DNA of 64,000 nucleotides from the IMG/VR virus record IMGVR_UViG_3300043410_001471, positions 181,437 through 245,436 of that record. One strand, 5' to 3'. The translations under genes and the position numbers were made by a program. This document shows, one piece after another, positions 1,728 to 63,961 of this stretch (the stretch's first letter is position 1; each line of letters starts with the position of its first letter). The notes under the pieces were generated by a model. That model saw only the letters and a program-made list of their open reading frames with translations. It had not been told where the DNA came from and did not search any database.

Positions 1728-1745
1728 TATAATAGTAAAATTAAT

Positions 1746-2849: not shown

Positions 2850-2850
2850 T

Positions 2851-4077: not shown

Positions 4078-4080
4078 AAT

Positions 4081-6642: not shown

Positions 6643-6643
6643 T

Positions 6644-7402: not shown

Positions 7403-7410
7403 TATATTTG
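7403..7410 (+). promoter_or_regulatory. Bacteroidota -7 promoter box (also at 12558, 29320, 29571, 33198, 40340, 62732)
   Basis: TAnnTTTG consensus, preceded by TTGG/TTGA, in intergenic gaps upstream of + strand genes. Confidence 0.75.
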
Positions 7411-7445
7411 TAAAACAAAATTAAAATTTAAATAAAACAACAATT

Positions 7446-8159
7446 ATGAACAAAAACAATCTATTACGATTTATCCAAAAGTATTCATTAGGTGGGGTAA
7501 TCGAATCGGTAGCATGGAACGCTGAAGGTAATAAGTTATCAGTTCGTTTCATTTCGGATGACAAGACTATGTTAGGTGAAGTGGATTTTGATGGTTTCAC
7601 ATCAACACCATTTAACATCGGTATTTACACAACTTCTTTATTAAAGAATTTAGTGGGAATTTTAGACAGTGATATCAATTTAAAAGTAGATTCAGTTGGA
7701 GATAAGGCGACTGTATTAAAGTTATCTTCAGATGAAACTGAAACATCTTATCAATTAGCAGATTTGGGAGTTATTCCATCTGTACCTGATTTGAAACAAA
7801 TGCCTGAATTTGGTATTGGTATTGAAATGGCATCTAATATGATTGATAAATTTATCAAAGCAAAAGGTGCATTATCCGATATCGATACATTCACTGTATT
7901 TACTGAAGGTGGTGATTTGAAAATGGCTATTGGTTATTCTTCAATCTCTACAAATAGAGTAACATTTACGGCAACTAAAGGGTTCGATGGTGAAGTAAAA
8001 CCAATTTCATTCTCAGCGAAGTATTTGAAAGAAATCTTAACAGCAAACAAAGAAGCAACTACTGCAAAGTTAAAAGTTTCAACTGATGGTTTAGCGCATG
8101 TTGAATTTAAGATTGATGAATTTACTTGTAAATATTATTTAGTTGAAATCTCAAATTAA
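7446..8159 (+). CDS. Sliding clamp (PCNA/gp45-like)
   Basis: 237 aa, FSAKYLKEIL motif, located between DNA polymerase and clamp-loader genes. Confidence 0.8.
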   Translation: MNKNNLLRFIQKYSLGGVIESVAWNAEGNKLSVRFISDDKTMLGEVDFDGFTSTPFNIGIYTTSLLKNLVGILDSDINLKVDSVGDKATVLKLSSDETETSYQLADLGVIPSVPDLKQMPEFGIGIEMASNMIDKFIKAKGALSDIDTFTVFTEGGDLKMAIGYSSISTNRVTFTATKGFDGEVKPISFSAKYLKEILTANKEATTAKLKVSTDGLAHVEFKIDEFTCKYYLVEISN

Positions 8160-8163
8160 TAGT

Positions 8164-8424
8164 ATGGAAGAGAAATTAGAACAACCTGTTGATATTGTAG
8201 ATGCGGAGTGGTGTTTTCAATTCTTTGATAACGAACCAGTTGTATTTGCATATTCTAACGAAGGGCAAGAAGAAGCTTCCCCATTAGTTCTACAAATTCA
8301 ATCGGTAGAGGGGCAGGGACTGCACTTCAAACACAATGGTATGGAATTTAAAATATTCCCAAGACCAGTTAGTGAAGAAACAAAATTAGAAAGAGTAAAA
8401 TCAAAAGAAAATGACATTCGATAA
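8164..8424 (+). CDS. Hypothetical acidic protein
   Basis: ORF filling the gap; ATG at 8164 just after the clamp stop preferred over 8143. Confidence 0.7.
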   Translation: MEEKLEQPVDIVDAEWCFQFFDNEPVVFAYSNEGQEEASPLVLQIQSVEGQGLHFKHNGMEFKIFPRPVSEETKLERVKSKENDIR

Positions 8425-8710
8425 TTTAATAGAAAATGTATCTCAATGGGCATCTGATAAAGATATCCTAAAGAAAGAAAACGCACCTAAACAATTGTTA
8501 AAGGTGTTAGAAGAAGTTGGCGAAACCGCAGGTGCTTTATTGAAATCCAAAGATGAGGAAATTAAAGATGGTATTGGTGATTCATTTGTAACACTTATCA
8601 TTTTAGCTAAACAATTAGGTTTAGAGCCTGCAGATTGTTTAGAAGCAGCATGGAATGAAATTAAAGATAGAACGGGTAAGACTGTAAATGGCGTATTCGT
8701 AAAAAATTAG
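8411..8710 (+). CDS. MazG-like NTP pyrophosphohydrolase
   Basis: EEVGE...DGIGD acidic helix motifs. Confidence 0.85.
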   Translation: MTFDNLIENVSQWASDKDILKKENAPKQLLKVLEEVGETAGALLKSKDEEIKDGIGDSFVTLIILAKQLGLEPADCLEAAWNEIKDRTGKTVNGVFVKN

Positions 8711-8712
8711 AA

Positions 8713-9663
8713 ATGAATATTTGGGTATCGGAATGGGCTTCAAATGAAATGAAAATGCTGGAATACATAAAGTTTCCAGCAACATTTCATTTAAATAGAA
8801 ACGGATTACCAATTTATAATTGTAATTATGGAGAGTATGATGCGTTTATCTGGTCTACAAAAGAATTTAAACCAGATGAGGTAACATTTTTATTAGAAAA
8901 TAATTGTAAAGTATTTCTTTTTTGTATTCATGGTGATGGGTTTCATTTAGAAAATCGTAAAGAGTTTTTAAAATACGATAATTTTAAAATTATTACCGGT
9001 GCAATAGATGGTGGACTGGCTGGACAAATATTGGAATATCCAAACACATATTTGGATGTTACATTAGTATTAGCTTATTATTATACTCTATTTGCGGTTG
9101 AACTCTATGAATTTCATAAAACAACTTCAAATAAATCATATAAAGTTGGGTTATGGCATAGAGAGGGATATAGACATGATAGAGATTTTTTAATAAAAAA
9201 TATTAGAAATTCCAAACACTCCGAATCATTTAAAATATTAACCCAAAAAGAATTGGATATATATGATGTCCTTATAGGGCGTGATATTGAAAGTAGTTAT
9301 AAACAATGGTCTGTGCAATATTTTAATTTTATGGATTGTGAATTATTTCTAAGTTTCGAATCAGCAAATACGGATTCAACACCATTCTTTTGTTCTGATA
9401 AAATATTGAAAGGATTTATTTTAGAAGCATTGGGTATACCAACTATTCATGTATTACAATCTACTCTTAAGTCTGAATTAGAAAAATATGGGTTTGATAT
9501 AATAGGATATACATCATATCAGGGTGAAATTGTTAATAAATTGATTGATATGAATGTAGATGAATTAAAAGAAAGAAACATCAAATCAAATAATTTGAAG
9601 ATACTTGAAGATATGATAAAGGGTGGACAAATTTTAAACGAATTAAAAAAAATAATGATATGA
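8713..9663 (+). CDS. Hypothetical, GT10 (fucosyltransferase)-like C-terminus
   Basis: FLSFESANTDSTPFFCSDK resembles GT10 FxLxFENS..YxTEK. Confidence 0.4.
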   Translation: MNIWVSEWASNEMKMLEYIKFPATFHLNRNGLPIYNCNYGEYDAFIWSTKEFKPDEVTFLLENNCKVFLFCIHGDGFHLENRKEFLKYDNFKIITGAIDGGLAGQILEYPNTYLDVTLVLAYYYTLFAVELYEFHKTTSNKSYKVGLWHREGYRHDRDFLIKNIRNSKHSESFKILTQKELDIYDVLIGRDIESSYKQWSVQYFNFMDCELFLSFESANTDSTPFFCSDKILKGFILEALGIPTIHVLQSTLKSELEKYGFDIIGYTSYQGEIVNKLIDMNVDELKERNIKSNNLKILEDMIKGGQILNELKKIMI

Positions 9664-10607
9664 GTTTTTTCGCAAACGATATTAGTAAAAGAGAGCATAG
9701 TTTGTGGGTGGAAAAATATCGACCACAAACACTTGCCGATTATGTTGGTAATGAAACCATCAAAGAAACTATTCAACAATATTTGGATAATAATGATATC
9801 CCACATTTATTGTTGTATGGAAAAGCCGGTACTGGTAAAACTACATTAGCAAAGTTAATCGTAAACACAATTAAATGTGACCATATGATTATCAATGCAT
9901 CGGATGAGAACAATGTGGATACAGTCCGTAACAAAGTAAAGAACTTCGCATCATCGGTGGGTTTTGCAGGATTTAAGGTTGTAATTTTGGATGAGTTTGA
10001 TTATATGACTCCAAACGCACAGGCAATCCTAAGAAATTTAATGGAAACATTCTCTAAACATTGTAGATTCATTTTGACTTGTAACTACATTGAGAAGATT
10101 ATTGACCCGATTCAAAGTAGATGTCAATCATTTGCAATCACACCTCCAACTAAAAAGGATGTGGCAGTGCAAGTTAGTAAGATTTTGGATAAAGAAGGTA
10201 TTAAGTACGATTTAAAAAATGTAGCTGATATTATCAGTTCATATTACCCAGATATTCGTAGAATCTTAAATACTTGCCAATTACAATCAGCTAAAGGTGA
10301 ACTGAAAGTGGATAAAGCTATTATGGTTGAATCCGATTTCAAAAATAAATTAGTAGATGCATTGAAGGGTTCGGATGATAAGAGAAATCTTTATTTAAAA
10401 ATAAGACAAATGGTGTTGGATAATCAAATGAATGATTATACCGAAATGTATACATATCTTTATGATAAAGTAGATGATTACGCAGGTGGTAACACAGCAA
10501 ATATCATTTTAGCAATTGCAGATTCTCAAGCAAAAGATGCATTGGTTGTTGATAAAGAAATTGTATTCGCATCATTATTAATTCAAATTATAAACATTAT
10601 AAGATAA
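9660..10607 (+). CDS. Clamp loader AAA+ subunit (RFC small subunit/gp44-like)
   Basis: WVEKYRP, Walker A GKAGTGKTT, DEFD, SRC motif. Confidence 0.95.
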   Translation: MSFFANDISKREHSLWVEKYRPQTLADYVGNETIKETIQQYLDNNDIPHLLLYGKAGTGKTTLAKLIVNTIKCDHMIINASDENNVDTVRNKVKNFASSVGFAGFKVVILDEFDYMTPNAQAILRNLMETFSKHCRFILTCNYIEKIIDPIQSRCQSFAITPPTKKDVAVQVSKILDKEGIKYDLKNVADIISSYYPDIRRILNTCQLQSAKGELKVDKAIMVESDFKNKLVDALKGSDDKRNLYLKIRQMVLDNQMNDYTEMYTYLYDKVDDYAGGNTANIILAIADSQAKDALVVDKEIVFASLLIQIINIIR

Positions 10608-10846
10608 TGGAACAAGGATTACCAATGGGTATCAATTTAAATGATGCCAGAGATATGGATTGTGAATGTGGAAATAAAACATTTATGCCAGGTTATAGAT
10701 TTAAAAAATTAAGTAAAATAATGACTGGTCAGCCACAAGATACAATTATTCCAATAGAAATGTATTTATGTACACAATGTGGTAAACCATTACAGGAATT
10801 ACTACCAAAAGAATTACAAGATAAACAATCATCAATAGGATTATAA
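10607..10846 (+). CDS. Small Zn-ribbon protein
   Basis: CECG ... CTQCG. Confidence 0.7.
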   Translation: MEQGLPMGINLNDARDMDCECGNKTFMPGYRFKKLSKIMTGQPQDTIIPIEMYLCTQCGKPLQELLPKELQDKQSSIGL

Positions 10847-43988: not shown

Positions 43989-46283
43989 ATGAAACACTTA
44001 TTAGTTACATTATTCTTATTCATATCATTTTTAGGGTTCGGACAGAGTGTATCTGCTCCGGACTCTAAATCGTTTATACCATCCACAACTGCACAAGATG
44101 CAAGTGGATTTGTATTGAGTGGATTCAATTCTACATCAACTCTATTAGCATCAATCAGTTTAGTAGAATACCCATCAGGTACTACATTCTATCTAACTAC
44201 CACAACAGGTTTAACTGCGGCAAGTGGATTTACATTGTCGGGAAATAAAACTCGATTAGTTGTAACGGGAACGATGGCTAATATCAATACGGCATTGGCA
44301 TCCCTAAAAGTAAATACTGGTTCGGTAGTAGGAAATGTTAAATTATCAGTAGCAGCAACAGTCAATCCAATCGGTTACTATTATAATGGTGTAAACGGAC
44401 ACTTTTACAAACCTGTATATCCTGGAACAACTTATACTAATGCAAGAGCAATATCTTTAACAACAACATTCAAAGGACAACAGGGATATTTGGTAACAAT
44501 TACATCAGCTTCGGAAGATGCTTTTATTCAAGCCAATGTTCCTCAAACCAATATATGGTTCGCCGCAACGGATGAAGTAATAGATGGAACTTGGGTAATA
44601 GATGCTGGTCCTGAAAAGGGAACTGTAATGAAAACAAGGAATGGTAATCTTAATGGAAACATTCCAGGTGTATATAACAACTGGGCAAGTGGTGAACCAA
44701 ATGGTAGTAATCATACTGAGGATTATGCGGTAACAAAATGGAATGGTAATTTATGGAACGATTTAAATAACAATTGGAATAATGCGTATGTAATTGAATA
44801 TGGAACTTGGAGTAATCCAGATGACCAAACATTTACCGAATTTTATACCAATTCAGTAAATCACTCAAATGGCTCAGTATTAAGAACTCAATTTAATTTT
44901 GATTTTGGTGGGAATGTAGATGAAACTAAATTCTCAGCAAAAGCAAACACTTATGTAAATAATGTATGGGGAACAACAAATTCAACTGCAAGAGCATTAA
45001 GTGGGTTAGGTAAAGTTGATATTACAAGTGATTTGGATACTGTTAAAATAAGTGGTAATGGTGTAAAAGCATCAACAACTGCTGGATATGCTGAATGGTG
45101 TGTAATATACGAATATGAAGTAACAAACCAAAGATATAGAGTTGGAATCGATAGTAGAGAGGTTACAGGTATTTTATCTGACCCATCAACAATCAGTAGT
45201 TTACAATTATTTGATTTATGGAATGGACCAGTTACCTATGGTAGTTATGACTCGAATGGTTGGACAGAGGTTTATATCTATACCACAACACCATTGAATT
45301 TCGCTGGTTCATCTTATACATCTAATATTAGAAATGGTGGTTCATATTATGCATTAACTGCAGAATTTACATTTTCACCAATTCAAAGTTACAAACAACA
45401 TGGAATTGAAATTGTTGCGAATTCACAAACTGAATTAAACACTTTATATACGAATATTGTAACAGTATCAGATGTTTATTTAGCATTTAAAGAATTATCG
45501 AATGGTGGTATATTGGGAAACCAAAGTGGATTGGAATTTGGAAATGGTATCCAATATATGAATGCGGATGTGGATGGTAATGGTTCATTTAATGAAGCAG
45601 ATACTTACAAACTATTACAACATTTGAGTGGGATTGCACCACTAACACAATATTCAGCATTAACTTATTTGATGAAATTATATAACAAATCAGATTATGA
45701 TGTAATAACAAAATCAAATTGGAATACACAATTAAATTCAACAAGAAGTTTGATTCCATTTAATTTGAACACTGGTGCATTGAATAACACTTACAATATA
45801 AATGTAACATGGGTAGGTGATGTAAACCTTTCACATTCAGCACAACAAACCCAAAGTAGTGTTGCAACTAATTCAATTAGAACTATGAGTTTGACAACTA
45901 ATTCGGTTTCAAATATCATAAACGCAGAATTGATGGGCGAAAATGTGGGTGGTAAGTTAGTTGTAACAATTACATTAGACCCGTTACAACAAGAAGTGGT
46001 TGGAACTCAATTTAATTTGAATTATGATAATACTGCTCTTAAATTTGAAAAAGTAGATTTTGTAACAAAGGGTAATCCTACCAATTTTGGAACTGATAAG
46101 GGAACATCTATAATATTTGGTTCTTTAATTACGGATGGTTCAACTACATTGGATAAAACGACTCAATACAAAATAACATTTGCACCACTAATGATGCTAG
46201 GTGATAATTTGGGATTAACATCTATATCACTAACTGATGCGGTTAATAAGAATGGTACACAATTAAAAGTAAAGTTAAACTAA
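43989..46283 (+). CDS. Secreted protein: C-type lectin + dockerin/EF-hand-like + cohesin-like domains
   Basis: Signal peptide (GFG|Q); YLVTITS..WF..W..YNNWASGEPN..WNDL lectin motif; DVDGNGSFNEAD; GTQFNLNYD. Confidence 0.75.
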   Translation: MKHLLVTLFLFISFLGFGQSVSAPDSKSFIPSTTAQDASGFVLSGFNSTSTLLASISLVEYPSGTTFYLTTTTGLTAASGFTLSGNKTRLVVTGTMANINTALASLKVNTGSVVGNVKLSVAATVNPIGYYYNGVNGHFYKPVYPGTTYTNARAISLTTTFKGQQGYLVTITSASEDAFIQANVPQTNIWFAATDEVIDGTWVIDAGPEKGTVMKTRNGNLNGNIPGVYNNWASGEPNGSNHTEDYAVTKWNGNLWNDLNNNWNNAYVIEYGTWSNPDDQTFTEFYTNSVNHSNGSVLRTQFNFDFGGNVDETKFSAKANTYVNNVWGTTNSTARALSGLGKVDITSDLDTVKISGNGVKASTTAGYAEWCVIYEYEVTNQRYRVGIDSREVTGILSDPSTISSLQLFDLWNGPVTYGSYDSNGWTEVYIYTTTPLNFAGSSYTSNIRNGGSYYALTAEFTFSPIQSYKQHGIEIVANSQTELNTLYTNIVTVSDVYLAFKELSNGGILGNQSGLEFGNGIQYMNADVDGNGSFNEADTYKLLQHLSGIAPLTQYSALTYLMKLYNKSDYDVITKSNWNTQLNSTRSLIPFNLNTGALNNTYNINVTWVGDVNLSHSAQQTQSSVATNSIRTMSLTTNSVSNIINAELMGENVGGKLVVTITLDPLQQEVVGTQFNLNYDNTALKFEKVDFVTKGNPTNFGTDKGTSIIFGSLITDGSTTLDKTTQYKITFAPLMMLGDNLGLTSISLTDAVNKNGTQLKVKLN

Positions 46284-54057: not shown

Positions 54058-54438
54058 ATGAAAAAAGAACAAGGATACAAAACAATTTTTAGTGATATCG
54101 ATGGGACTCTAATTGAGCAAGTTAGTTTCGAAGAGTTAGACCCAAATGTGGTAAATGTTTTACCAGGTGTTAAAGAGAAAATGAATGAATGGTACAATGC
54201 CGGACATTACATCGTTTTAACTACTGCAAGACCAGAACATTTGAGAGAGATTACTGAAATTCAAATGAACAAAGCAGGTATCAGATTTGACCAATTGGTT
54301 ATGGGTATCGGTAGAGAGGAACGAATTTTAATCAATAACAACTCTTCAAAAGACCCACAACGAAACCGAGCATTTGGAGTGCCAGTTGCTAGAGACGGTG
54401 GGTTTAATCAAATTGATTTTGAATCTGTTGGTTTATAA
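54058..54438 (+). CDS. Cap-less HAD phosphatase
   Basis: FSDIDGTL, LTTAR. Confidence 0.8.
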   Translation: MKKEQGYKTIFSDIDGTLIEQVSFEELDPNVVNVLPGVKEKMNEWYNAGHYIVLTTARPEHLREITEIQMNKAGIRFDQLVMGIGREERILINNNSSKDPQRNRAFGVPVARDGGFNQIDFESVGL

Positions 54439-54465: not shown

Positions 54466-54839
54466 GGGGATGCCCGGTATTGACAGGTATGAAGTGTTAG
54501 TACAATTGATGCAAGCAGGATTAGATGGAAATCCTTAAACACCTATCGAACAATAAACGCAGTAGAATTATCTACAATGACCTTCGAAGATGCTATGGCA
54601 TTCGTTGGTGCTGATTTAGCAGTAGCTGCCTAATCTCTCCCGCACACATCGTGGGACTTGAAATAGAATGTGAACCCAGGTGGATACCAATTGAACCCGA
54701 AATCGAATTGGAAACATTAATGATAACGAATGTATAAATCTTTATCTATTTTGTCAGTTAAGAAAAACTGACTAAGCTTGTGAATGAGGTTTATTAAACC
54801 ATATTTTGGACGAGGGTTCGACTCCCTCCATCTCCACCA
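54466..54839 (+). ncRNA. ssrA: tmRNA; predicted tag (A)AVELSTMTFEDAMAFVGADLAVAA*
   Basis: GGGGATG/CATCTCC-ACCA acceptor with G3.U70, TTGAC after the 5' end, GGGTTCGACTCCC T-arm, tag ORF 54559-54633 ending AVAA. Confidence 0.93.
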
Positions 54840-54866
54840 TTTTGAAAAAAATTTATACTTATTAGT

Positions 54867-55121
54867 ATGATAAAACTAACGGATTTAATAAGTGAAGCAA
54901 CTACATCTTGGTCAAGAATGATGCAAGGTGTTAGAGCTGGTGGTTCAGGCCCTTGGTCTTTAGTTGCAATTGAGTACAACAAAGTAGTTGCTCAAAAGAA
55001 TAACATTAAAGATAAGAATCTTTTACCTGCTCACTTCGAAGCAATGAGAAGAGAAAATCCAAAAGCTAAAATCCATATCGAAGATGCGGGTGGACAAGTA
55101 GTTTGGAATGAAAAAAAATAA
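54867..55121 (+). CDS. Small protein with MIKLTDLISE N-terminus
   Basis: ORF after ATACTTATTAGTA motif. Confidence 0.75.
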   Translation: MIKLTDLISEATTSWSRMMQGVRAGGSGPWSLVAIEYNKVVAQKNNIKDKNLLPAHFEAMRRENPKAKIHIEDAGGQVVWNEKK

Positions 55122-55125
55122 TACA

Positions 55126-55509
55126 ATGAAACTAAAAGACTTATTAAACGAAAGTGTAGTTGCCAAAGATGGTAAAGTAACATCAAGTGGTAATCTTATC
55201 GGTTATTATGAATTCGATAGAGATTCAGATTCTTTTTGGGTAGATGATGTAAAGAAAGGCAAAGGTCAATTATCATTTGAAACCAAAAAGGAAGTTGAAG
55301 ATTACTTTAAGAAGAATGAAAAAGATGCTATCAAACATTTAGGAAAATTGAGAGAATCCATTCCAGAAGCAACAATGCATGATATGACAAGAGAAAAGGC
55401 ATTGGATAATCTTAAAGATGTAATTCATAATATCAGACCTTATAGTAAGGAAGTAGTTAAACATTGTGAAGCAGCTATTGCAATCATAGAGAAATTTGAA
55501 AAACGATAA
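55126..55509 (+). CDS. Small protein with MKLKDLLNE N-terminus
   Basis: ATG 55126 preferred; second LRES site internally. Confidence 0.75.
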   Translation: MKLKDLLNESVVAKDGKVTSSGNLIGYYEFDRDSDSFWVDDVKKGKGQLSFETKKEVEDYFKKNEKDAIKHLGKLRESIPEATMHDMTREKALDNLKDVIHNIRPYSKEVVKHCEAAIAIIEKFEKR

Positions 55510-56261
55510 TGATTAAGTTAAAAGATTTATTAAATTCAAACATATTAAATGAGGGTGTAGATGACCCGGGTATTCTTAAATGTGTATTTTTAGCAGGAGG
55601 ACCTGGTAGTGGTAAATCGAAGGTAGCTGCAGATTTGTTTGGTGTACAAGGTATAGCAACATTTTCGGCAAGTGGATTGAAGATGGTGAATTCTGATATC
55701 GCATTTGAAGCTCAATTAAAAAAGAGTGGTATTGACCCAAAAGATTTAGGTAAAATTGAAAAGGAAGACCCTGCATTATGGGATTTCATTACTAAATCAA
55801 AAGAAGGTCCGAGAGAAACGGGAAAAGGAATTACTCAAAAAACCAAAGCATTTTATGAAGAGGGTAGATTGGGTATGATTATAGATGGTACGGGTGATGA
55901 TGTGGCTAAAATCAGAAAGCAAAAAGCAAGAGCAGAAGAGTTAGGATACGATACATATATGGTATTTGTGAATACATCATTGGAAATAGCTCAGGCTCGT
56001 AACGCTAAAAGAAGTAGAAGTTTGCCAGAATCATTGGTTAATGATATATGGAAAGAATGTCAGCACAATTTAGGAGCATTTCAAACCCTATTTAGTGGTA
56101 ATTTCCGTATCATAGATAACACAAAGGATGGTAACAATATAACATCAAGCATTCAAAAAGCAGTTGATGGATTCATAAGAGAACCATTGAGAAATGCAGT
56201 TGGTAAGAAATGGGTAACGAATGCAAGAATTTTAAAAAACGCAAATATAATTAAGAAATGA
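55509..56261 (+). CDS. Zeta-toxin/AAA_33-like P-loop kinase with MIKLKDLL N-terminus
   Basis: LAGGPGSGKS, MIIDGT, ARNAKRSR. Confidence 0.75.
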   Translation: MIKLKDLLNSNILNEGVDDPGILKCVFLAGGPGSGKSKVAADLFGVQGIATFSASGLKMVNSDIAFEAQLKKSGIDPKDLGKIEKEDPALWDFITKSKEGPRETGKGITQKTKAFYEEGRLGMIIDGTGDDVAKIRKQKARAEELGYDTYMVFVNTSLEIAQARNAKRSRSLPESLVNDIWKECQHNLGAFQTLFSGNFRIIDNTKDGNNITSSIQKAVDGFIREPLRNAVGKKWVTNARILKNANIIKK

Positions 56262-56959
56262 TAAAGGCAGGTAGATACGATTTAAACGAAGCATCATTAG
56301 GTAGAATATATCAACATGTGGTTTCAAATCCTAAAATGAAAAATTGGGGAGTAGTAACTGCAAGTAGAGGTGAATTGACACCTGCTGAAAACAAACAAAG
56401 AAACAAAGAGTTAGAAAACGATTTGCGTAAATTGGGATACGGGTTTGTTCATGTAGATGGTATGTGGCAGGAATGTAGACAACCAAATACGGAATATAAG
56501 GATTGTCCAGAAGATATGAAAGTACCAACTGAAGAGAAATCTTTATTTGTACCTAACATATCACAACAACATATTCAGGCATTAGGTAAGAAGTATCAAC
56601 AAGATAGTGTATTATTTGCGGATGAAGCAACTAAAGCCAAAGGTGAAGCAACATTTATTGATTCAAAATCAGGTGAAGCATTCAACATTGGTAAGTTTGC
56701 ACCTGGCAAAATAGCACAAGGTTATTCTAAAATGAAAGGTGGTAAAGTATTCACATTTGAACCACAAGAAGAGCCTAAAGAAGAACCAAAGGATGATATG
56801 AAGTTGAAATCTTTATTACCTAAAGGAATATTGGATAAAACTGTTATGAATCCTGATACAGGTAAAATGATTAAGGTTAAATCGGCGTTGAAATACGATG
56901 ATGACCATAAGGTTAAGCAGGCTGCAAAATCAATGATTAAAACTGCTTTACATAAATAA
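56258..56959 (+). CDS. Conserved-looking phage protein with C-terminal basic module
   Basis: LNEASLGR; TASR..EN..RN..L..DLR..GYG; LGKKYQQDSVL. Confidence 0.7.
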   Translation: MIKAGRYDLNEASLGRIYQHVVSNPKMKNWGVVTASRGELTPAENKQRNKELENDLRKLGYGFVHVDGMWQECRQPNTEYKDCPEDMKVPTEEKSLFVPNISQQHIQALGKKYQQDSVLFADEATKAKGEATFIDSKSGEAFNIGKFAPGKIAQGYSKMKGGKVFTFEPQEEPKEEPKDDMKLKSLLPKGILDKTVMNPDTGKMIKVKSALKYDDDHKVKQAAKSMIKTALHK

Positions 56960-56964
56960 ATTTT

Positions 56965-58197
56965 GTGAAAATTGGTTATTTGAATAAATGTGTATTTTAC
57001 ACATTCCAAGGTAGTAATGTATTATCCGATTTGGAAAAATTGGAATACGATATTACGCAATATCAAATCGATGAATCATTTGATTATGATTCCATCGATA
57101 CAGAGAAAACCAATTTCTTAATTTTTAATTGGAGTAGGTATTTTACCGAGTATTACGATGACCCTATTGATAAAGAGGAATATCGTAAACAAGGTTTTGT
57201 ATTTACTAAAAAGTTTTTTGAAATAGTTGAAATATTATCTGAAAAGGGATTTAATTTTTTGATAGATAATGTAATGGAAGCTGATGTGTATATAACTCCG
57301 GAATTAGTTTTCTTCTTGGAAAAATTCCATCAGATGAAAATTAATTCGAATAGATTAGCTATGATTTATAACAATAGTATAAACATGGGTAGTTCTATTG
57401 TTAGAATTAGAAATTTTGAATTAAATACCTTTCATTTTCCTCATTTTTTCATATCCACATTATTTGAATTACCAGATATAGTAGATTGTAAATTTGAAAA
57501 GGAAACGGATTTTTTAATTCTAAATAGAAGATTGGGATTAAATAAATTTAAATTATTAAAAACCATATCTGATAGGGGATTATTGGATAAATGTTTATAT
57601 ACGATTCTATCGATTTTGCCAGATACTACTTATAATTTAAATAAGTATGCTGAATTGAATGAAGTGGCAAAACATATAGGATTGGATAGATTACCAATAA
57701 CATTATCCGATGATATTGCTGATGTAAACGATGTATTAAAAGATGATACATATTTGTATAGATTAAATACAAATGTATTTTTTAAGACAAAAGTTAATAT
57801 CATACCTGAAACATTTTTAGATTATAGAATTGATGATAGATTTACAAATACAATTCATATTACTGAAAAAACATGGAAAGCAATATATATAGGAGTCCCA
57901 TTTGTAGTAAGCGCTACAAACGGACATATTGAAACTTTACATAAGTTTGGATTCAAAACTTTTAACAATGTAATTGATGAAAGTTATGATTTGGAAGAAG
58001 ATGTTGATATTAAATTAGATAAGATAGTAACATCAGCAATTCAATTACTTGATAAGTACAATACAAATGAAGTATTGGATATTATTGAGTACAATAAAGC
58101 CCTTTTTAAGAATATTGAGCATAAAAAAAGTATTATTGAAGAATACTTTATAAAAGATTTTCAAAATATTTTTAAAAAAAATAAAAAATATATATAG
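56965..58197 (+). CDS. Hypothetical, GT10-like C-terminus
   Basis: GTG start; NIIPET..ITEKTWKAI..PF. Confidence 0.5.
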   Translation: MKIGYLNKCVFYTFQGSNVLSDLEKLEYDITQYQIDESFDYDSIDTEKTNFLIFNWSRYFTEYYDDPIDKEEYRKQGFVFTKKFFEIVEILSEKGFNFLIDNVMEADVYITPELVFFLEKFHQMKINSNRLAMIYNNSINMGSSIVRIRNFELNTFHFPHFFISTLFELPDIVDCKFEKETDFLILNRRLGLNKFKLLKTISDRGLLDKCLYTILSILPDTTYNLNKYAELNEVAKHIGLDRLPITLSDDIADVNDVLKDDTYLYRLNTNVFFKTKVNIIPETFLDYRIDDRFTNTIHITEKTWKAIYIGVPFVVSATNGHIETLHKFGFKTFNNVIDESYDLEEDVDIKLDKIVTSAIQLLDKYNTNEVLDIIEYNKALFKNIEHKKSIIEEYFIKDFQNIFKKNKKYI

Positions 58198-58253
58198 ATA
58201 TATTTGGAAGTTAAAAAAAACTTTCGTATATTTGTATCAACAAAAGAGAAAAA

Positions 58254-58264
58254 GTTCTTTAACA
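58254..58264 (+). promoter_or_regulatory. boxA-like antiterminator GTTCTTT(A/G)A (also 58951, 62744)
   Basis: Resembles rrn boxA (TGCTCTTTAACA); each copy lies between a promoter and a stable-RNA gene. Confidence 0.55.
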
Positions 58265-58270
58265 TTATAT

Positions 58271-58341
58271 CGTGGGGTAGTGTAACGGTAGCATATTGGG
58301 CTCATAACCCTAAGACGGAGGTTCGAATCCTCCCCCCGCAA
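58271..58341 (+). tRNA. tRNA-fMet(CAT)
   Basis: C1.A72 mismatch, GGG/CCC anticodon stem, cloverleaf. Confidence 0.92.
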
Positions 58342-58967
58342 CTAAAGTAAAAAAATTTACAAATAAATTAGGAAATGTGAAAATGTTTTCGTATATTTGT
58401 AAAACAAAATGAGATAGTGGTTGAAGCCAACATCTAATAAAACCGAATGTGTGAACATCTTTCCAACATATTAGCGGAGGGGTTAAAAAGCCGGATATCA
58501 CTAATTCATTTTGAAAAATATAATAATTGTGGGAGAGTAGACTAATTGTAAATAAGACGCCCGTAAAATGTACAACATTTCAATTATTATTACAAATAAT
58601 TTGGAAGTTTGAAAAAACTTTCGTATATTTGTAAAGTTGTTCAGAAGTAGGAAGTATATATGGTGTAAGTAAACATAGCTGAAAATGTTCAACAAAAAAA
58701 ATTAAAATAAATTTGAAAGTTTATTTGGAATTGTGAAAAAAAAGTATTATCTTTACATAGTAAATGAGAAACTTATAGGCGATGAAAGATACTCGGTATT
58801 CAAATTTATAAAAAAATAATTGTAAAAATATTAGGAAGTTTGGAAAAGTTTTCGTATCTTTACAAAGTAATCAGAAATCGTAAAAACATACCTGAAGTAA
58901 GAGTAACAAAGTTTACTATACCAAATGGTTGAAATCTGATTACAAAAAATGTTCTTTAAAATACTGA

Positions 58968-59837
58968 AAAGATTATACATAGTAGATTCGTTCTACATAG
59001 TATAACAACGGCCGCCTATGGTCGTGAAATAAACTACGAAAGTAGGATAAAGTGGGTACATTGGTTAATGTAACTGCGGCTACTCCCCCGTAAGGGAGCA
59101 AGCTTGAGTAGGCAAGTGAGATATCATTCTGACTTTGTAGGTGGGGGTAACACTATCATCGAAGAGCCGGAATGACTGGGCAAATGTAGATTGTTCAGTT
59201 GAGATGGGAACATCAATAAGAATAACTCATAGAATTATTGTGAAAAGTAAGGACTTAATCTCTCCTTATTATTGCGTGATTCAATACAAAAGTGGTCTTG
59301 AGAATCAAGCTATCCGAAAGGACGTGAGATAAGATAATGTACGAGTGGTGTCGTTATTATCCTTTAGACTGGGACACCAATCCCTTCTATTGAAGATGAC
59401 TTGAAGTATGGTGATAGGGATATCACATTGAGTAGTATAGTATTCTGTTGTTCAAAAGATAACGGAGCTGGTGGCAAACCACTACTCGAATCCATCTACA
59501 AACCAAAACTCATTTGCATTTTGACGCAAAATCATAAATCAAGTAAGCAAAAGTGTTTGCCAGTTTCAGATGAAAGGTGTGTACATAGTAGGGAGTTGTT
59601 CCTTGCCACGATACCTCCGCAAGAGGTCTGTGATTCTTTTGAAAGGTTTCTAGCATCGCAAGTGTGAATCAGCTCGGCAGGGTTGAAGAAAATAAGTAGG
59701 AAGAGAGTAATCTGAAACTCTAAGAGTGGTTGGCTATACTAACCCACATTGAATTGGTACATCTCAAAAGGGTGTGGAAAAGAAAGGAAACAATAATCTT
59801 TCGAAAGCTGGTTCACAAAAAGGAGTATTCTCATCCT
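58968..59837 (+). ncRNA. Large structured ncRNA, GOLLD-like (boundaries approximate)
   Basis: ~870 nt, GC-richer than flanks, no convincing ORF, many short hairpins (CTAC-GAAA-GTAG 59034, CTCCC..GGGAG 59083, ACCTC-CGCAA-GAGGT 59613), directly upstream of the tRNA array. Confidence 0.7.
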
Positions 59838-59844
59838 TATATAA

Positions 59845-59915
59845 GCGAGATTAGTGTAACGGTAGCACAGCAGCCGTCCAGGTTGCAAGATGGGGTTCAA
59901 TTCCTTGGTTTCGCT
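59845..59915 (+). tRNA. Atypical tRNA-Gly(TCC), G33, weak T-stem
   Basis: GCGAGAT/GTTTCGC-T acceptor; anticodon loop CG-TCC-AG. Confidence 0.65.
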
Positions 59916-60131
59916 CTTCGTAGTGGTTTACGGCAGATAGGTTGGGTGTATCTCTCCAATAACTGGAAATCCACTTTAAAAAAAATGACAAATAGTGTGA
60001 AGATATGGTTTTCGTAGGGGATTTTCGCCTTAAACAATCTCAACCAATACGAATTAGTGTTGATGGTAAAAGCGGCTGTAGCTAGGCCTTTGAAAGTACC
60101 ACCCTACAAATCTTTCTTTTATAGCTTATAA

Positions 60132-60202
60132 GCGGTGGAAGTGTAATGTTTGCACACCTAGCGTCCAGCTAGGGGGAGGTGGTTCGAATCCACACCACCG
60201 CT
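60132..60202 (+). tRNA. Atypical tRNA-Gly(TCC), G33
   Basis: Perfect GCGGTGG/CCACCGC-T acceptor; CCTAG/CTAGG stem; loop CG-TCC-AG. Confidence 0.75.
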
Positions 60203-60326
60203 CAATTAACTAATTTATTGAGGATGATAATAACCGGTGCATGACACGACGTGGCGTATTTTGAAGATGAATTAGTTTATTTTATAAAAAAATAACTTTT
60301 AATAAATTTTTACATATATATTAACA

Positions 60327-60485
60327 ATGAAAACTCTTAACATACATACAAATTGTTCATTAGCGGCTCAAAGAAATGAGTGGCAAGGGCTTGGTATGTT
60401 TAGTACGATAGCAAATCCGGCAGTCTTGAATTTAGGCAAGGTGGATTATATTGGAAAAAAGTTAAGGGACACTGATGTAGGATAG
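60327..60485 (+). CDS. 52-aa possible leader peptide
   Basis: MKTLNIHTNCSLAAQRNEWQGLGMFSTIANPAVLNLGKVDYIGKKLRDTDVG, followed by a terminator. Confidence 0.45.
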   Translation: MKTLNIHTNCSLAAQRNEWQGLGMFSTIANPAVLNLGKVDYIGKKLRDTDVG

Positions 60486-60517
60486 TAGTGTAAGATTTAG
60501 ATAAAAGATATTTAAAG

Positions 60518-60556
60518 AACCCCTTAACTAATTAAAAAAAGTTAAGGGGTTTTTTG
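60518..60556 (+). terminator. Rho-independent terminator immediately before tRNA-Asn
   Basis: AACCCCTTAAC/GTTAAGGGGTT 11-bp stem + T-run. Confidence 0.85.
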
Positions 60557-60560
60557 TTTT

Positions 60561-60632
60561 GGGATGGTAGCTCAGAGGCAGAGCAGATGACTGTTAATCA
60601 TCAGGTCGAGATTTCGAAATTCTCCCTTCCCT
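60561..60632 (+). tRNA. tRNA-Asn(GTT)
   Basis: Cloverleaf, GATGA-CTGTTAA-TCATC; single mismatches in the acceptor and T stems. Confidence 0.8.
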
Positions 60633-60638
60633 CAAAAT

Positions 60639-60716
60639 AGAAGATTAGCTCAGTCGGTTCAGAGCAATTCGTTTACACCGAATAGGTCATAGGTTCGAAT
60701 CCTATATCTTCTACCA
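60639..60716 (+). tRNA. tRNA-Val(TAC), CCA encoded
   Basis: Canonical cloverleaf. Confidence 0.93.
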
Positions 60717-60722
60717 TTTAAC

Positions 60723-60804
60723 GCCGACGTCGCATAGTGGCAATTGCAAGGGACTGTAAATCCCTCCTCTTCGGAGTTCGTAGGTTCGAGTCCTACCGGC
60801 GGCA
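60723..60804 (+). tRNA. tRNA-Tyr(GTA)
   Basis: AGGGA-CTGTAAA-TCCCT, long variable arm. Confidence 0.92.
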
Positions 60805-60810
60805 CAAAAT

Positions 60811-60883
60811 GGAGCTTTGGTATAGCTGGTGCGTACGCTAGTCTGAAGAACTAGAGGATAAGGTTCGATTCCTTGAGGCTCCA
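60811..60883 (+). tRNA. tRNA-Phe(GAA)
   Basis: CTAGT-CTGAAGA-ACTAG. Confidence 0.9.
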
Positions 60884-60978
60884 CAATGAATTGGCTAAGA
60901 CATCGTAAAATCGATGGGTGGTGATTCCGAATTTATTTGTGAGCCACTTAAACACTGATAGCAATGTCAATTCAATTT

Positions 60979-61052
60979 GAACTCGTAGCTCAGTCGGTTA
61001 GAGCACCTCACTTTTAATGAGGGAGTCAATGGTTCGAGTCCATTCGGGTTCA
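60979..61052 (+). tRNA. tRNA-Lys(TTT)
   Basis: CCTCA-CTTTTAA-TGAGG. Confidence 0.93.
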
Positions 61053-61107
61053 CATAGTAGTTTTGAGGTTGGCGAATTCTACTTTAAAAAAATAATCCAT
61101 CCACCAT

Positions 61108-61180
61108 AGGGTAGTTGACTAATGGTTAAGTCACTTGCTTTGGGAGCAAGACGATGGAGGTTCGAGTCCTCTCTACCCTA
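61108..61180 (+). tRNA. tRNA-Pro(TGG)
   Basis: CTTGC-TTTGGGA-GCAAG. Confidence 0.9.
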
Positions 61181-61186
61181 CAACAC

Positions 61187-61260
61187 TGGTAGTTAGCTCA
61201 TTTGGTTAGAGCATCTCGCTGATACCGAGAAGGTGGCAGGTTCGAATCCCGCACTACCAA
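61187..61260 (+). tRNA. tRNA-Ile(GAT)
   Basis: TCTCG-CTGATAC-CGAGA. Confidence 0.9.
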
Positions 61261-61338
61261 CAATACGAATCAACCGGGTGGCTGAAACCTGACTAGTAGT
61301 GGAGAATACCCACAACCCGGTCAATGTTCGTATTAACT

Positions 61339-61409
61339 ATGGGTATGGTGCAATGGTAGCATACCGGTCTCCAAAACCGATGATGTGGGTTCGAATCCTA
61401 CTACCCGTG
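61339..61409 (+). tRNA. tRNA-Trp(CCA)
   Basis: CTCCAAA loop, G73. Confidence 0.88.
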
Positions 61410-61471
61410 CTAAATGATAAAACTATGAAACAATTATTTGACAAGCATTAGGTAACAAAACCTAATGTATT

Positions 61472-61675
61472 ATGACAAACAAAGAGTATCGAGTAAAACG
61501 AATGAAGCAATCGTATGATTATTGCTACATTTGTCAGAAAAGAAACGGGAGTTGGTATTATGATTGTTCGCCCACATTTGTATATGGTAGACATGGAAGT
61601 GGGAAACCAATTGAATCATTCAAAGTAAGAAGATTCAGAAGTTGGAAATACAATCGTAAAACTCAATGGAAGTAA
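61472..61675 (+). CDS. Small basic Cys-containing protein within the tRNA array
   Basis: CYIC; C-terminal RSWKYNRKTQWK. Confidence 0.65.
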   Translation: MTNKEYRVKRMKQSYDYCYICQKRNGSWYYDCSPTFVYGRHGSGKPIESFKVRRFRSWKYNRKTQWK

Positions 61676-61679
61676 AGTT

Positions 61680-61751
61680 GGTTCTATGGTGTAATGGATA
61701 GCACTCTTCACTACGGATGAAGCAGTTTGGGTTCGAATCCTAATAGAACTA
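61680..61751 (+). tRNA. tRNA-Arg(ACG)
   Basis: CTTCA-CTACGGA-TGAAG. Confidence 0.9.
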
Positions 61752-61759
61752 CATTAAAT

Positions 61760-61831
61760 GTCAGGTTGGCCGAGTTGGTTAGGCGGAGGACTGCAAATCC
61801 TTTTACATTGGTTCGAATCCAATACGTGACT
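61760..61831 (+). tRNA. tRNA-Cys(GCA)
   Basis: GAGGA-CTGCAAA-TCCTT, U73. Confidence 0.9.
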
Positions 61832-61839
61832 CGATAAAG

Positions 61840-61886
61840 GATACTGGTTGTATCGCCTGACGAGGAGAGTGTGGTTCGATTCCACA
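61840..61886 (+). pseudogene. tRNA-like fragment without acceptor stem
   Basis: GATAC-TGGTT-GTATC hairpin and perfect T-arm TGTGG-TTCGATT-CCACA. Confidence 0.45.
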
Positions 61887-61890
61887 AAAC

Positions 61891-61960
61891 TGCATGGCTT
61901 AGTGGAAAAGAGTTATCTCTCATAAGGATGACCAAATGAGTTCGAACCTCATACATGCAA
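61891..61960 (+). tRNA. Atypical tRNA(CAT)
   Basis: TGCATG/CATGCA acceptor, extended 7-bp anticodon stem, shortened 8-9 connector. Confidence 0.5.
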
Positions 61961-61965
61961 CATAT

Positions 61966-62042
61966 GGTGTTTATAGTGTCAGCGGTTAGCACTTCAGTTT
62001 GTGGTACTGATAGCATGGGTTCGAATCCCATTAAACACCCCA
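61966..62042 (+). tRNA. tRNA-His(GTG), G-1:C73 and CCA encoded
   Basis: 8-bp acceptor, TTGTGGT loop. Confidence 0.93.
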
Positions 62043-62044
62043 AT

Positions 62045-62130
62045 AGAGAGTTACCCAAGTTGGTGAAGGGGCTTGTTTGCTAAACAAGTAGGATGTAAAA
62101 GTCGCAAGGGTTCGAACCCCTTACTCTCTA
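62045..62130 (+). tRNA. tRNA-Ser(GCT)
   Basis: CTTGT-TTGCTAA-ACAAG, long variable arm. Confidence 0.9.
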
Positions 62131-62139
62131 CGGAAACAC

Positions 62140-62214
62140 ACCCGTATGGCGGAATTGGAATACGCAGTGGCTTTAGACACCACACAATTGAAGGTTCGAG
62201 TCCTTCTATGGGTA
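62140..62214 (+). tRNA. tRNA-Leu(TAG), short variable region
   Basis: ACCCGTA/TATGGGT acceptor; loop TT-TAG-AC; lacks the usual long arm. Confidence 0.75.
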
Positions 62215-62231
62215 CAATAAATAACAATGAT

Positions 62232-62687
62232 ATGGTTTATAGAAAACTACATGATGGAACAAAAGTTGAATTAGAAACATATATCGCTGAATATATGAAT
62301 GAACATGAAGGAGTTGAAATACTAATTGGATGTGATTCACAAAACTTCAGAGATAAAACTATCTATGCGATTGTTGTAGCATTATATACGCCAGGTAGAG
62401 GAGCGCATGTATTGTATAATCGGTGGAATGCACCGAGAGAGTACACTCGTTCAGTAAGATTATTAAATGAAGTTTGGTTTGCAGTTGAAGTAGCAGAAGA
62501 ATTACGAAATGCCGGAGTTCAAAAAGCAACTTGGATTGATGTGGATTTAAATCCAGACCCTAAATACAAATCTAATGAAGTGTTCAGACAAGCAGTAGGT
62601 ATGGTTGAAGGTATGGGTTATAATGTACGATACAAAACTTTAGGTCCAATCGCAACATATTGTGCGGACCATTTAGTAAAAATGTAG
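62232..62687 (+). CDS. YkuK/DUF458 RNase H-like protein
   Basis: ILIGCDSQ, RLLNEVW, IDVD, ADH; ATG 62232 (the ORF-track extension overlaps tRNAs). Confidence 0.85.
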   Translation: MVYRKLHDGTKVELETYIAEYMNEHEGVEILIGCDSQNFRDKTIYAIVVALYTPGRGAHVLYNRWNAPREYTRSVRLLNEVWFAVEVAEELRNAGVQKATWIDVDLNPDPKYKSNEVFRQAVGMVEGMGYNVRYKTLGPIATYCADHLVKM

Positions 62688-62773
62688 AAAATAAATATAT
62701 AGAATTAGTTGACATTATAAAAAACTTTTCGTATATTTGTAATGTTCTTTGAAATAATGGTTTAGTAAGTAAC

Positions 62774-62847
62774 GCTCCGTTGGACAAATCGGTTAAGTCG
62801 CATCCCTTTCACGGATGAGATTAGGGGTTCGAGCCCCCTACGGAGTA
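62774..62847 (+). tRNA. tRNA-Glu(TTC)
   Basis: CATCC-CTTTCAC-GGATG. Confidence 0.93.
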
Positions 62848-62955
62848 CAACTCACATATCAAACACTTTAATTCGGTCAAGCCACATTGAGCCGTTAGTA
62901 TGTGAATAGGTAAGAGAGAGGTGGTGGCTGGTACATCTCTCTTACTACAACTTTT

Positions 62956-63028
62956 GCCTCCGTAGCTCATTTGGTAGAGCAGCTGATTTGTAATCAGCAG
63001 GTGGTTGGTTCGAGCCCGACCGGAGGCT
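62956..63028 (+). tRNA. tRNA-Thr(TGT)
   Basis: GCTGA-TTTGTAA-TCAGC. Confidence 0.93.
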
Positions 63029-63163
63029 CAATGATTACTGAAATTGAATGATACGAGCCCCGAAAGTTCGAAATGAGTCAATTGGTAATCATAGAGTGGA
63101 TTCATCAGTTGATGAAAACCAATCGGGGGTTGTCCCACTAGAATGGAAACATCCCCTGCAATC

Positions 63164-63237
63164 GGTACTTTGGTGTAGAGGCCTAACATGCTTCCCTGTC
63201 ACGGAAGAGACCACGGGTTCGAATCCCGTAAGTACCG
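63164..63237 (+). tRNA. tRNA-Asp(GTC)
   Basis: CTTCC-CTGTCAC-GGAAG, G73. Confidence 0.93.
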
Positions 63238-63426
63238 CGAAACCTGTTTTGATGGTAAATCCCAACATAATCCATCATCGTATAAGGGGTTGGGCAGATT
63301 GAGAAGCTGTCTTCGCTACGAAAGCGGAAAATATCTACAAATAAGATGAATAGAACACACTTTTGAGTTAGTGGCATGCTAAAGGTTCTCATCTGGTACA
63401 CAAGACCAGAGTTCATCTTATTATTT

Positions 63427-63500
<74 letters not shown>

Positions 63501-63512
63501 CATTAGAGTAAT

Positions 63513-63597
63513 GCTCGGGTGGTGTAATGGTAGCCACGAGGGACTTAAAATCCCTTGAACCGAAAGGTTCGTGCCGGTTCGAGTCCGGCCCCGAGTA
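63513..63597 (+). tRNA. tRNA-Leu(TAA)
   Basis: AGGGA-CTTAAAA-TCCCT, long variable arm. Confidence 0.93.
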
Positions 63598-63604
63598 CTG
63601 AAAC

Positions 63605-63677
63605 GGGGGTATGGTATAGTTGGCTAACACACTTGCCTTGCACGCAGGAATCCAGAGTTCGAATCTCTGTACCTCCA
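63605..63677 (+). tRNA. tRNA-Ala(TGC)
   Basis: G3.U70, CTTGCAC loop. Confidence 0.9.
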
Positions 63678-63729
63678 CTATCGTTGAAATATACGATAAA
63701 AACTATTATCGTTCATAATAACGATATTC

Positions 63730-63803
63730 GGACTTGTAGCTCAGTCGGTTAGAGCACCGCACTCATAATGCGTAGGTCGTTGGTTCGAGCCCAGCCTGGT
63801 CCA
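63730..63803 (+). tRNA. tRNA(CAT), elongator Met or Ile2
   Basis: CTCATAA loop, paired G1-C72. Confidence 0.88.
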
Positions 63804-63808
63804 CATAA

Positions 63809-63880
63809 GCAGATATCGTATAATGGTTATTACTCTAGCCTTCCAAGCCTGAGATGTCAGTTCGATTCTGACTATCTGCT
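63809..63880 (+). tRNA. tRNA-Gly(TCC), canonical loop
   Basis: GCAGATA/TATCTGC-T; CT-TCC-AA loop; two mismatches in the anticodon stem. Confidence 0.8.
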
Positions 63881-63961
63881 CAACTCAAGTACCCATACCG
63901 CTAACGATGGGCTAAGTAAGATACAATTCCGTACTGCGGGGAGTAGAATGCTTGAGATTAT

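Follow-up and report, generated by a model that had tools for sequence, protein, structure and literature searches.

Results

Genomic setting of the locus

The window analyzed here, i.e. the whole stretch of 64 kb, is the final part (181437-245436) of a 245,436-bp IMG/VR virus record. With direct terminal repeats and a completeness rating of 100%, this record represents a jumbo phage, as the initial annotation had proposed. A thymidylate synthase gene of the phage shows 82% DNA identity to its counterpart in Flavobacterium phages. From 54466 to 63881, the window carries 22 tRNAs, two tRNA-like elements, and a tmRNA, and a GOLLD RNA lies within this island, in agreement with the location near tRNA genes known for GOLLD in phages. 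This RNA had been thought to head the tRNA array; in fact, it occupies the second place in the RNA island, behind a tRNA-Met at 58271, and a hairpin and a small open reading frame (ORF) stand between it and the main array. The tmRNA gene (54466-54839) is located between a PNK-phosphatase-like ORF (54058-54438) and an AAA_33/polynucleotide-kinase-like ORF (55509-56261). These PNK-like ORFs beside the tmRNA and the RNA island may possibly constitute an RNA-repair set.

The longest ORF in any frame between 58200 and 60500 comprises 95 amino acids; a protein-coding reading of the region was therefore rejected, and the earlier observation of a long region without a credible ORF holds. The region is also richer in GC than its surroundings, with a GC content of 0.36-0.43 across 58850-60200 as compared to 0.20-0.29 in the upstream flank. 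Hairpin loops of the GNRA type, likewise noticed at first inspection, are present at 59038-59041 (GAAA), 59090-59093 (GUAA), 59316-59319 (GAAA), 59619-59622 (GCAA), and 59658-59661 (GCAA).

Identification of the GOLLD RNA and its 3' domain

Covariance-model searches identified the RNA as a member of the GOLLD family. The Rfam model RF02032, which covers only the conserved 3' domain and hence the 3' half of the RNA, matched 59428-59837 (+) with 301.7 bits and an E-value of 2.3e-85, about twice the gathering cut-off of 150. The match spans the full model (1-416 of 416), contains very few non-canonical pairs, and ends exactly at 59837, the end coordinate that the initial annotation had given. It represents the only GOLLD copy in the whole 245-kb genome. 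The models of ROOL, OLE, RNase P, and group I/II introns gave no match at gathering score in the whole window and nothing at E ≤ 1 with lax filters in 58200-60650; thus, GOLLD alone matched and no competing family was found.

Within the RF02032 match, a 10-bp long-range helix is formed by 59562-59571 with 59709-59718 (+). The covariance-model alignment furthermore revealed an A-rich unpaired linker at 59490-59560 (+), the counterpart of a linker that lies disordered within the cage formed by the GOLLD RNA env-38 (PMC12286853). No tRNA is embedded in this linker, which distinguishes it from Mycobacterium GOLLDs, where the linker contains one. The hairpin loop at 59657-59661, self-complementary and of the GC type, reads CGCAA and alternates with UCGAA among relatives (tabulated in 18 loci with a strict pattern). 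A GC/CG switch was reported for the self-kissing loop L21a of GOLLD (PMC12286853); the alternation observed here would match this switch, a mapping made by analogy and from few loci.

The 5' domain and its relation to env-38

The 5' domain (59009-59427, +) was delimited by alignment of relatives, covariation, and homology to env-38, and is of the env-38/lake type. It aligns with the GOLLD loci of the uncultured phages LR745206 (635 kb) and LR756502 (642 kb). These two rank among the largest known uncultured phage genomes, and each encodes one GOLLD with the same type of 5' domain adjoining a tRNA (LR756502, L001 3038-3444; LR745206, L002 3440-3845). Further related loci were gathered by DNA pattern scans. 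At least 120 IMG/VR contigs, many with a length of 100-320 kb, contain a universally conserved 28-nt motif (59027-59054 in the window; AAATAAAC NNN GAAAG NN GGATAAAGTG), and in nearly all of them motifs of the 3' domain follow at the expected distance.

The 5' domains of the window and 61 phage loci (62 non-redundant sequences with <90% mutual identity) were aligned, and a consensus structure was calculated with RNAalifold. It consists of 94 pairs, 73 of which show at least one compensatory double change, so that covariation across related phages supports the predicted fold. Standard pairs occupy 97.2% of the cells as compared to 36-43% when the 3' partner was slid by 1-3 columns; these slid controls still gave 25-35 apparently compensated pairs.

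The cryo-EM construct of env-38 opens with GG-AT-GGCCGCTATGGTCGTCAAATAAA..., equivalent to the window from about 59008-59010, and the start GGCCGC...AAAUAAA..CGAAAG..GGAUAAAGUG is common to both RNAs. The same helices are found over the first ~480 nt of env-38, i.e. throughout the 5' domain and as far as the beginning of the 3' domain, and include a GAAA-tipped arm located at 59314-59321 in the window. Shared start and helices place the structural GOLLD at about 59009-59837, with a length of roughly 830 nt as compared to 833 nt for env-38. The RNA had previously been described as about 870 nt long and starting at 58968; its end could be retained, but the RNA proper starts about 40 nt later, at about 59006-59010. 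The 40 nt between 58968 and the conserved RNA correspond to a leader hairpin.

Transcripts and RNA ends

Contigs of three freshwater metatranscriptome runs (X5, X14, and X21) and of the DNA run X3 were analyzed across 58000-61000 at ≥88% identity. Summed word depth over the GOLLD bins (59010-59817) was 1396-10757 in X5, 1908-9238 in X14, and 14-128 in X21. In the upstream flank (58303-59009), the respective values were 41-127, 0-142, and 0-0.7, and in the bin of the adjacent tRNA-like element (59818-59918) 0, 0, and 1.4. The DNA run remained flat at 20-141 across the same bins. Hence, GOLLD depth exceeded that of the upstream flank roughly 10-260-fold in the three lake metatranscriptomes, where contig depth pools related phages from mixed communities, contigs are without strand, and the DNA control is a different sample. 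Several RNA contigs were identical to the window.

Furthermore, X21 contigs joined to the Illumina adapter ended at 59006, 59016, and 59825, the last of these 12 nt short of the end of the RF02032 match, which points to defined RNA ends near the env-38 boundaries. The depth step over 59010-59817 with flat DNA indicates a mature RNA of about 830 nt. A discrete and abundant GOLLD RNA is expressed in the lake metatranscriptomes, where it represents pooled related phages.

Promoters and leader hairpin

Upstream of the GOLLD RNA, a promoter-bearing repeat of about 48-70 nt occurs in five copies within 58202-58880, starting at 58202, 58367, 58599, ~58714, and 58830. Two of these copies contain the exact Bacteroidota-type consensus TTTG-N20-TAnnTTTG, at 58203-58234 and 58600-58631. 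The latter (TTTG-N20-TATATTTG, +) accounts for the promoter that the initial annotation had seen before the RNA, and is followed by two weaker promoter-like units at 58724-58755 (TTTG N20 TATCTTTA, +) and, nearest to GOLLD, at 58831-58862 (TTAG N20 TATCTTTA, +). Relatives present in the RNA and DNA runs possess one unit as compared to three in front of GOLLD in the window (joint 58588->58967). A scan for sigma-70 promoters gave 15 sites as compared to 9.2 expected; for Bacteroidota, such a scan carries no information.

A hairpin at 58973-59005 (+; z = -3.75) separates boxA, described below, from the GOLLD core. It is under-represented in the RNA libraries and is therefore probably removed from the RNA.

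An rRNA-type boxA in the leader

A boxA-like site had been noted in front of the RNA. The sequence at 58950-58962 (TGTTCTTTAAAAT, +), located upstream of GOLLD and of the leader hairpin, indeed corresponds to the boxA of Bacteroidota rRNA leaders. Of the 90 related loci with enough flanking sequence, 87 (~97%) have its core GTTCTTTRA in sense orientation in the 150 nt that precede the GOLLD motif, at distances of 27-139 nt. For comparison, 91 Bacteroidota rRNA loci were fetched with a pattern for the 5' end of 16S rRNA. In 44 of them, the 410 nt preceding 16S contained the same 9-mer, mostly at positions -95 to -150, with a background of 0.035 per kb. There, it stands in the context A(A/C)GTTCTTTGAAnnnATTGA, with the same AAnnATTG extension as in the phages. 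The 18-mer of the window, TGTTCTTTAAAATACTGA (58950-58967), differs by two mismatches from AGTTCTTTAAAATATTGA in one 16S leader of Owenweeksia.

Of 80 unique leaders, 68 contain the -7 box TAnnTTTG at most 110 nt before boxA (background 0.11 per 110 nt), with a modal gap of 26-28 nt between both elements. In the window, the nearest promoter unit is an imperfect match at a distance of 88 nt from boxA, as compared to the usual 26-28 nt. The occurrence of Bacteroidota-type promoters before GOLLD, both here and in these 68 leaders, supports the earlier assignment of the phage to Bacteroidota.

Additionally, the boxA motif precedes tRNA or tmRNA genes in 35 of 128 non-GOLLD hits in the phage loci, as compared to 2.3% expected. 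Within the window, GTTCTTTRA is present at 58254-58262, 17 nt before the tRNA-Met (58271), and at 62744-62752, 30 nt before a tRNA-Glu (62774). The distribution of the motif suggests that the tRNA island may contain several Nus-dependent RNA operons. An exact Bacteroidota promoter (46016-46047) and a boxA-like 9-mer (46120-46128) were also found inside the 3' end of an ORF encoding a lectin/cohesin-like protein of 767 amino acids.

The tRNA-like element downstream of GOLLD

Seven nucleotides past the end of GOLLD, an element begins that ARAGORN classified as tRNA-Gly(tcc) (59845-59916, +), so that the RNA is followed by a tRNA as first described; this tRNA is, however, weak and unusual. The Rfam tRNA model gave 34.1 bits (cut-off 29) and detected it only with lax filters, whereas the other tRNAs of the window reached 50-74 bits. 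A second tRNA-Gly-like element is located at 60132-60202 (+; 37.2 bits). Both copies fold as cloverleaves, which is also the minimum-free-energy fold of 59845-59916, and both possess the anticodon loop CGUCCAG, in which position 33 is a G. A U at this position is nearly universal in tRNAs. A better tRNA-Gly(UCC) with U33 is encoded at 63809-63881 (57.6 bits).

The slot downstream of GOLLD was compared among the closest relatives. It is occupied by a normal tRNA-Gly with a CUUCCAG loop and U33 in L108 and L122. In L043, L036, L045, L082, and L048, acceptor and D arms are kept, the T loop is absent, and the anticodon loop has 8 nt; in L024 and L063, only an acceptor/T-arm minihelix is present. 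Altogether, a tRNA or tRNA-like element 8-18 nt past the end of GOLLD was detected in the window and about a dozen of 90 loci. The position of this slot is conserved and its decoding features are not; we therefore propose that the tRNA-like element may serve as a processing signal for RNase P. As a tRNA directly after GOLLD is detectable in a minority of loci, release by RNase P cannot be a general rule.

Between the two tRNA-Gly-like elements, a conserved and expressed RNA of about 215 nt, here termed RNA "X", is located at 59917-60131 (+). Its 5' and 3' ends pair (GUAGUGGU/ACCACCCUAC), and its summed word depth was 550-650 in X5 and 178 in X14; it is probably co-transcribed. It had no match in Rfam, and homologues in IMG/VR were confined to three loci (L024, L063, and L246). 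Further downstream, a long AT-rich hairpin with a T-rich run behind it (60208-60277, +) is kept after the tRNA-like element in relatives; its fold is no better than that of shuffled sequences. A canonical intrinsic terminator was not found in 58100-60600, and the hairpin possibly marks the end of the operon. The small ORF at 60327-60485 encodes 52 amino acids (MKTLN...) without a family match; it is conserved in relatives and lies directly behind GOLLD in L017.

Discussion

The window RNA is a newly recognized member of GOLLD, a known family reportedly first described by Weinberg et al. 2009. Taken as a whole, the segment from about 59009 to 59837 (+) is very probably a gene for a GOLLD RNA, carried by a freshwater phage of 245 kb whose hosts are probably Bacteroidota. 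GOLLD RNAs are found in prophages of Lactobacillales, tRNA arrays of Mycobacterium, and lake and marine metagenomes, usually near tRNAs (PMC12286853, PMC6582537, PMC12990946). The locus shares the phage context and the tRNA-island neighborhood described in these reports and differs in the probable host phylum and in belonging to a jumbo phage. Its closest known counterpart in structure is env-38, a GOLLD RNA from a marine metagenome that forms a 14-mer nanocage (Kretsch et al. 2025, PMC12286853); family and type of 5' domain are common to both. In env-38, the 5' region constitutes the cap and the 3' region the ring of a cage with D7 symmetry (PMC12286853). Both RNAs possess the arm with the GAAA tip, a linker that is unpaired and follows the first helix of the 3' domain, and a 3' domain matching RF02032. 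Both also adjoin a tRNA, with env-38 located downstream of a tRNA-Met and the window RNA in front of the G33 tRNA-Gly-like element. The two sequences have diverged, however; the env-38 cage was seen by cryo-EM, and a cage of the window RNA is predicted from homology to env-38.

Its general appearance, long, devoid of ORFs, rich in GNRA loops, and adjacent to tRNAs, is common to ROOL, and the RNA might on this basis be assigned to ROOL, to OLE, RNase P RNA, or a group I/II intron, or to an unrelated new RNA. The covariance-model searches refute such an assignment: none of these families appeared at either threshold, GOLLD matched over the full model at twice its cut-off, and the 5' half aligns with env-38, which leaves this reading a practically negligible probability. 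A decaying or silent GOLLD remnant without a role for the phage is very improbable as well. In a family without an assigned function, there is no functional residue to check; however, the full-length match with its very few non-canonical pairs, a fold maintained through compensatory changes with respect to 61 relatives, and the abundance of the RNA in three metatranscriptomes, with some contigs identical to the window, all argue against decay.

The two elements flanking the RNA are open to more debate. GTTCTTTRA is short and AT-rich and occurs within AT-rich genomes, five times in the window as compared to 2.2 expected, and 93 of its 248 hits in related loci precede no recognized RNA gene; it may thus belong to the fold of the GOLLD precursor, mark a site of processing, or bind a phage protein and only look like boxA. 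A fixed structural role is hard to reconcile with the variable distance to the first GOLLD helix (27-139 nt). Furthermore, Bacteroidota 16S genes have the 9-mer with its flanks as their leader motif; the 9-mer keeps a stereotyped spacing from the -7 box, and it also stands before tRNA-Met and tRNA-Glu here and before tRNAs of relatives about 12 times as often as expected by chance. We consider an identity other than boxA rather doubtful, though of appreciable weight, and prefer the reading as boxA. Similarly, the element at 59845-59916 may be an ordinary decoding tRNA-Gly that adjoins GOLLD because both belong to the same island, with the 3' end of GOLLD being made otherwise. Its cloverleaf fold and its score above the Rfam cut-off agree with this assumption, as do the normal CUUCCAG loops in the same slot of L108 and L122 and the majority of GOLLD loci in which no tRNA follows directly. 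Against it stand the replacement of U33 by G33 in this element and in the second copy at 60132, the better tRNA-Gly(UCC) already present at 63809, and the slots of the closest relatives with a missing T loop, an 8-nt anticodon loop, or an acceptor/T minihelix. Additionally, GOLLD and the next bin differ more than 1000-fold in the RNA runs, which indicates that the two RNAs are separated. A purely decoding role therefore appears somewhat improbable, and we favor a tRNA-like element acting as a processing signal.

In rRNA operons, boxA RNA binds NusB-S10 and nucleates a complex of Nus factors that renders transcription Rho-resistant and aids co-transcriptional folding (PMC10931766). From sequence identity and position, we infer that the boxA in the GOLLD leader would serve as a device for the same factors. 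The locus resembles a bacterial rRNA operon in its tandem promoters, in a boxA with the same sequence as in Bacteroidota 16S leaders, in its long, untranslated, and highly structured product, and in its downstream tRNA punctuation. In contrast to an rRNA operon, the product is a phage RNA; furthermore, no boxC was found at the locus, nor a long stem between leader and trailer for RNase III. A long stable RNA followed by a tRNA-like structure, at which cleavage by RNase P sets the 3' end, is also known from MALAT1-mascRNA. This system is eukaryotic, unrelated in sequence, and relevant as an analogy only; the version proposed for the window is deduced from position and decayed decoding features. 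ROOL, which is likewise encoded by phages near tRNA islands and forms an RNA-only cage, presumably has a related kind of role; its sequence and fold are unrelated to GOLLD, and the window contains no ROOL match.

An unannotated GOLLD was also detected in a cultured phage, Acinetobacter phage vB_AciJM_313 (PX050566.1, 106 kb; L247 2259-2642, 207 bits), in a gap of 985 nt between the annotated genes for tRNA-Gln and tRNA-Pro. No boxA is present directly upstream of this GOLLD, which is located in the middle of an array; its absence fits the idea that boxA marks operon heads only.

Production of the RNA may be pictured as follows. Quite likely, host RNA polymerase would start at the tandem Bacteroidota sigma-A-type promoters, 90-350 nt upstream of the RNA. 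In the nascent leader, the boxA typical of host rRNA operons would then recruit NusB-S10 and Nus factors and thereby allow fast, Rho-resistant, and folding-competent elongation, a step that we hold to be slightly better than an even prospect. The leader including the hairpin 58973-59005 would be trimmed, and a cut by RNase P at the 5' end of the tRNA-like element would release the 3' end; the chances for and against this processing route seem evenly balanced. Since the RNA is homologous to env-38, it is likely that its ~830 nt would fold as separate 5' and 3' domains and self-assemble into a similar closed multimeric cage. The cage would act during lytic growth in connection with the neighboring island of tRNA, tmRNA, and RNA-repair genes. 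Among conceivable roles, holding or shielding a translation-related RNA or protein may be the best candidate, a tentative suggestion that by itself is rather unlikely to be right.

GOLLD belongs to the largest bacterial and phage non-coding RNAs without a known function, and the structure of its cage was solved in 2025. The present locus adds the context of a complete jumbo phage and Bacteroidota as the probable host phylum for the abundant lake-type GOLLDs. New are the corrected boundaries, the metatranscriptome data that show an abundant ~830-nt RNA, and the location of lake-type GOLLDs behind Bacteroidota promoters and an rRNA-type boxA, often with tRNA-like punctuation to follow. A link between GOLLD and boxA was not found in the literature searched, which returned unrelated plant papers only; nor was tRNA-like punctuation at the 3' end of GOLLD found there.

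Freshwater Bacteroidota phages may have shaped their GOLLD genes as mimics of rRNA operons, with sigma-A promoters of the host (in tandem in the window), the rrn boxA of the host at a stereotyped distance, a giant RNA, and a tRNA-like punctuation with decayed decoding features; the phage would borrow the antitermination and folding machinery of host rRNA as well as RNase P to mass-produce and release a self-assembling RNA cage. We regard this proposal as standing about midway between doubt and acceptance. The boxA leader and the tRNA-like punctuation suggest ways to perturb GOLLD production in vivo, and vB_AciJM_313, as a cultured phage, offers a tractable system for a GOLLD knock-out. If the mimicry of rRNA operons holds true, the boxA leader would provide a handle to switch off GOLLD while leaving the RNA itself untouched.
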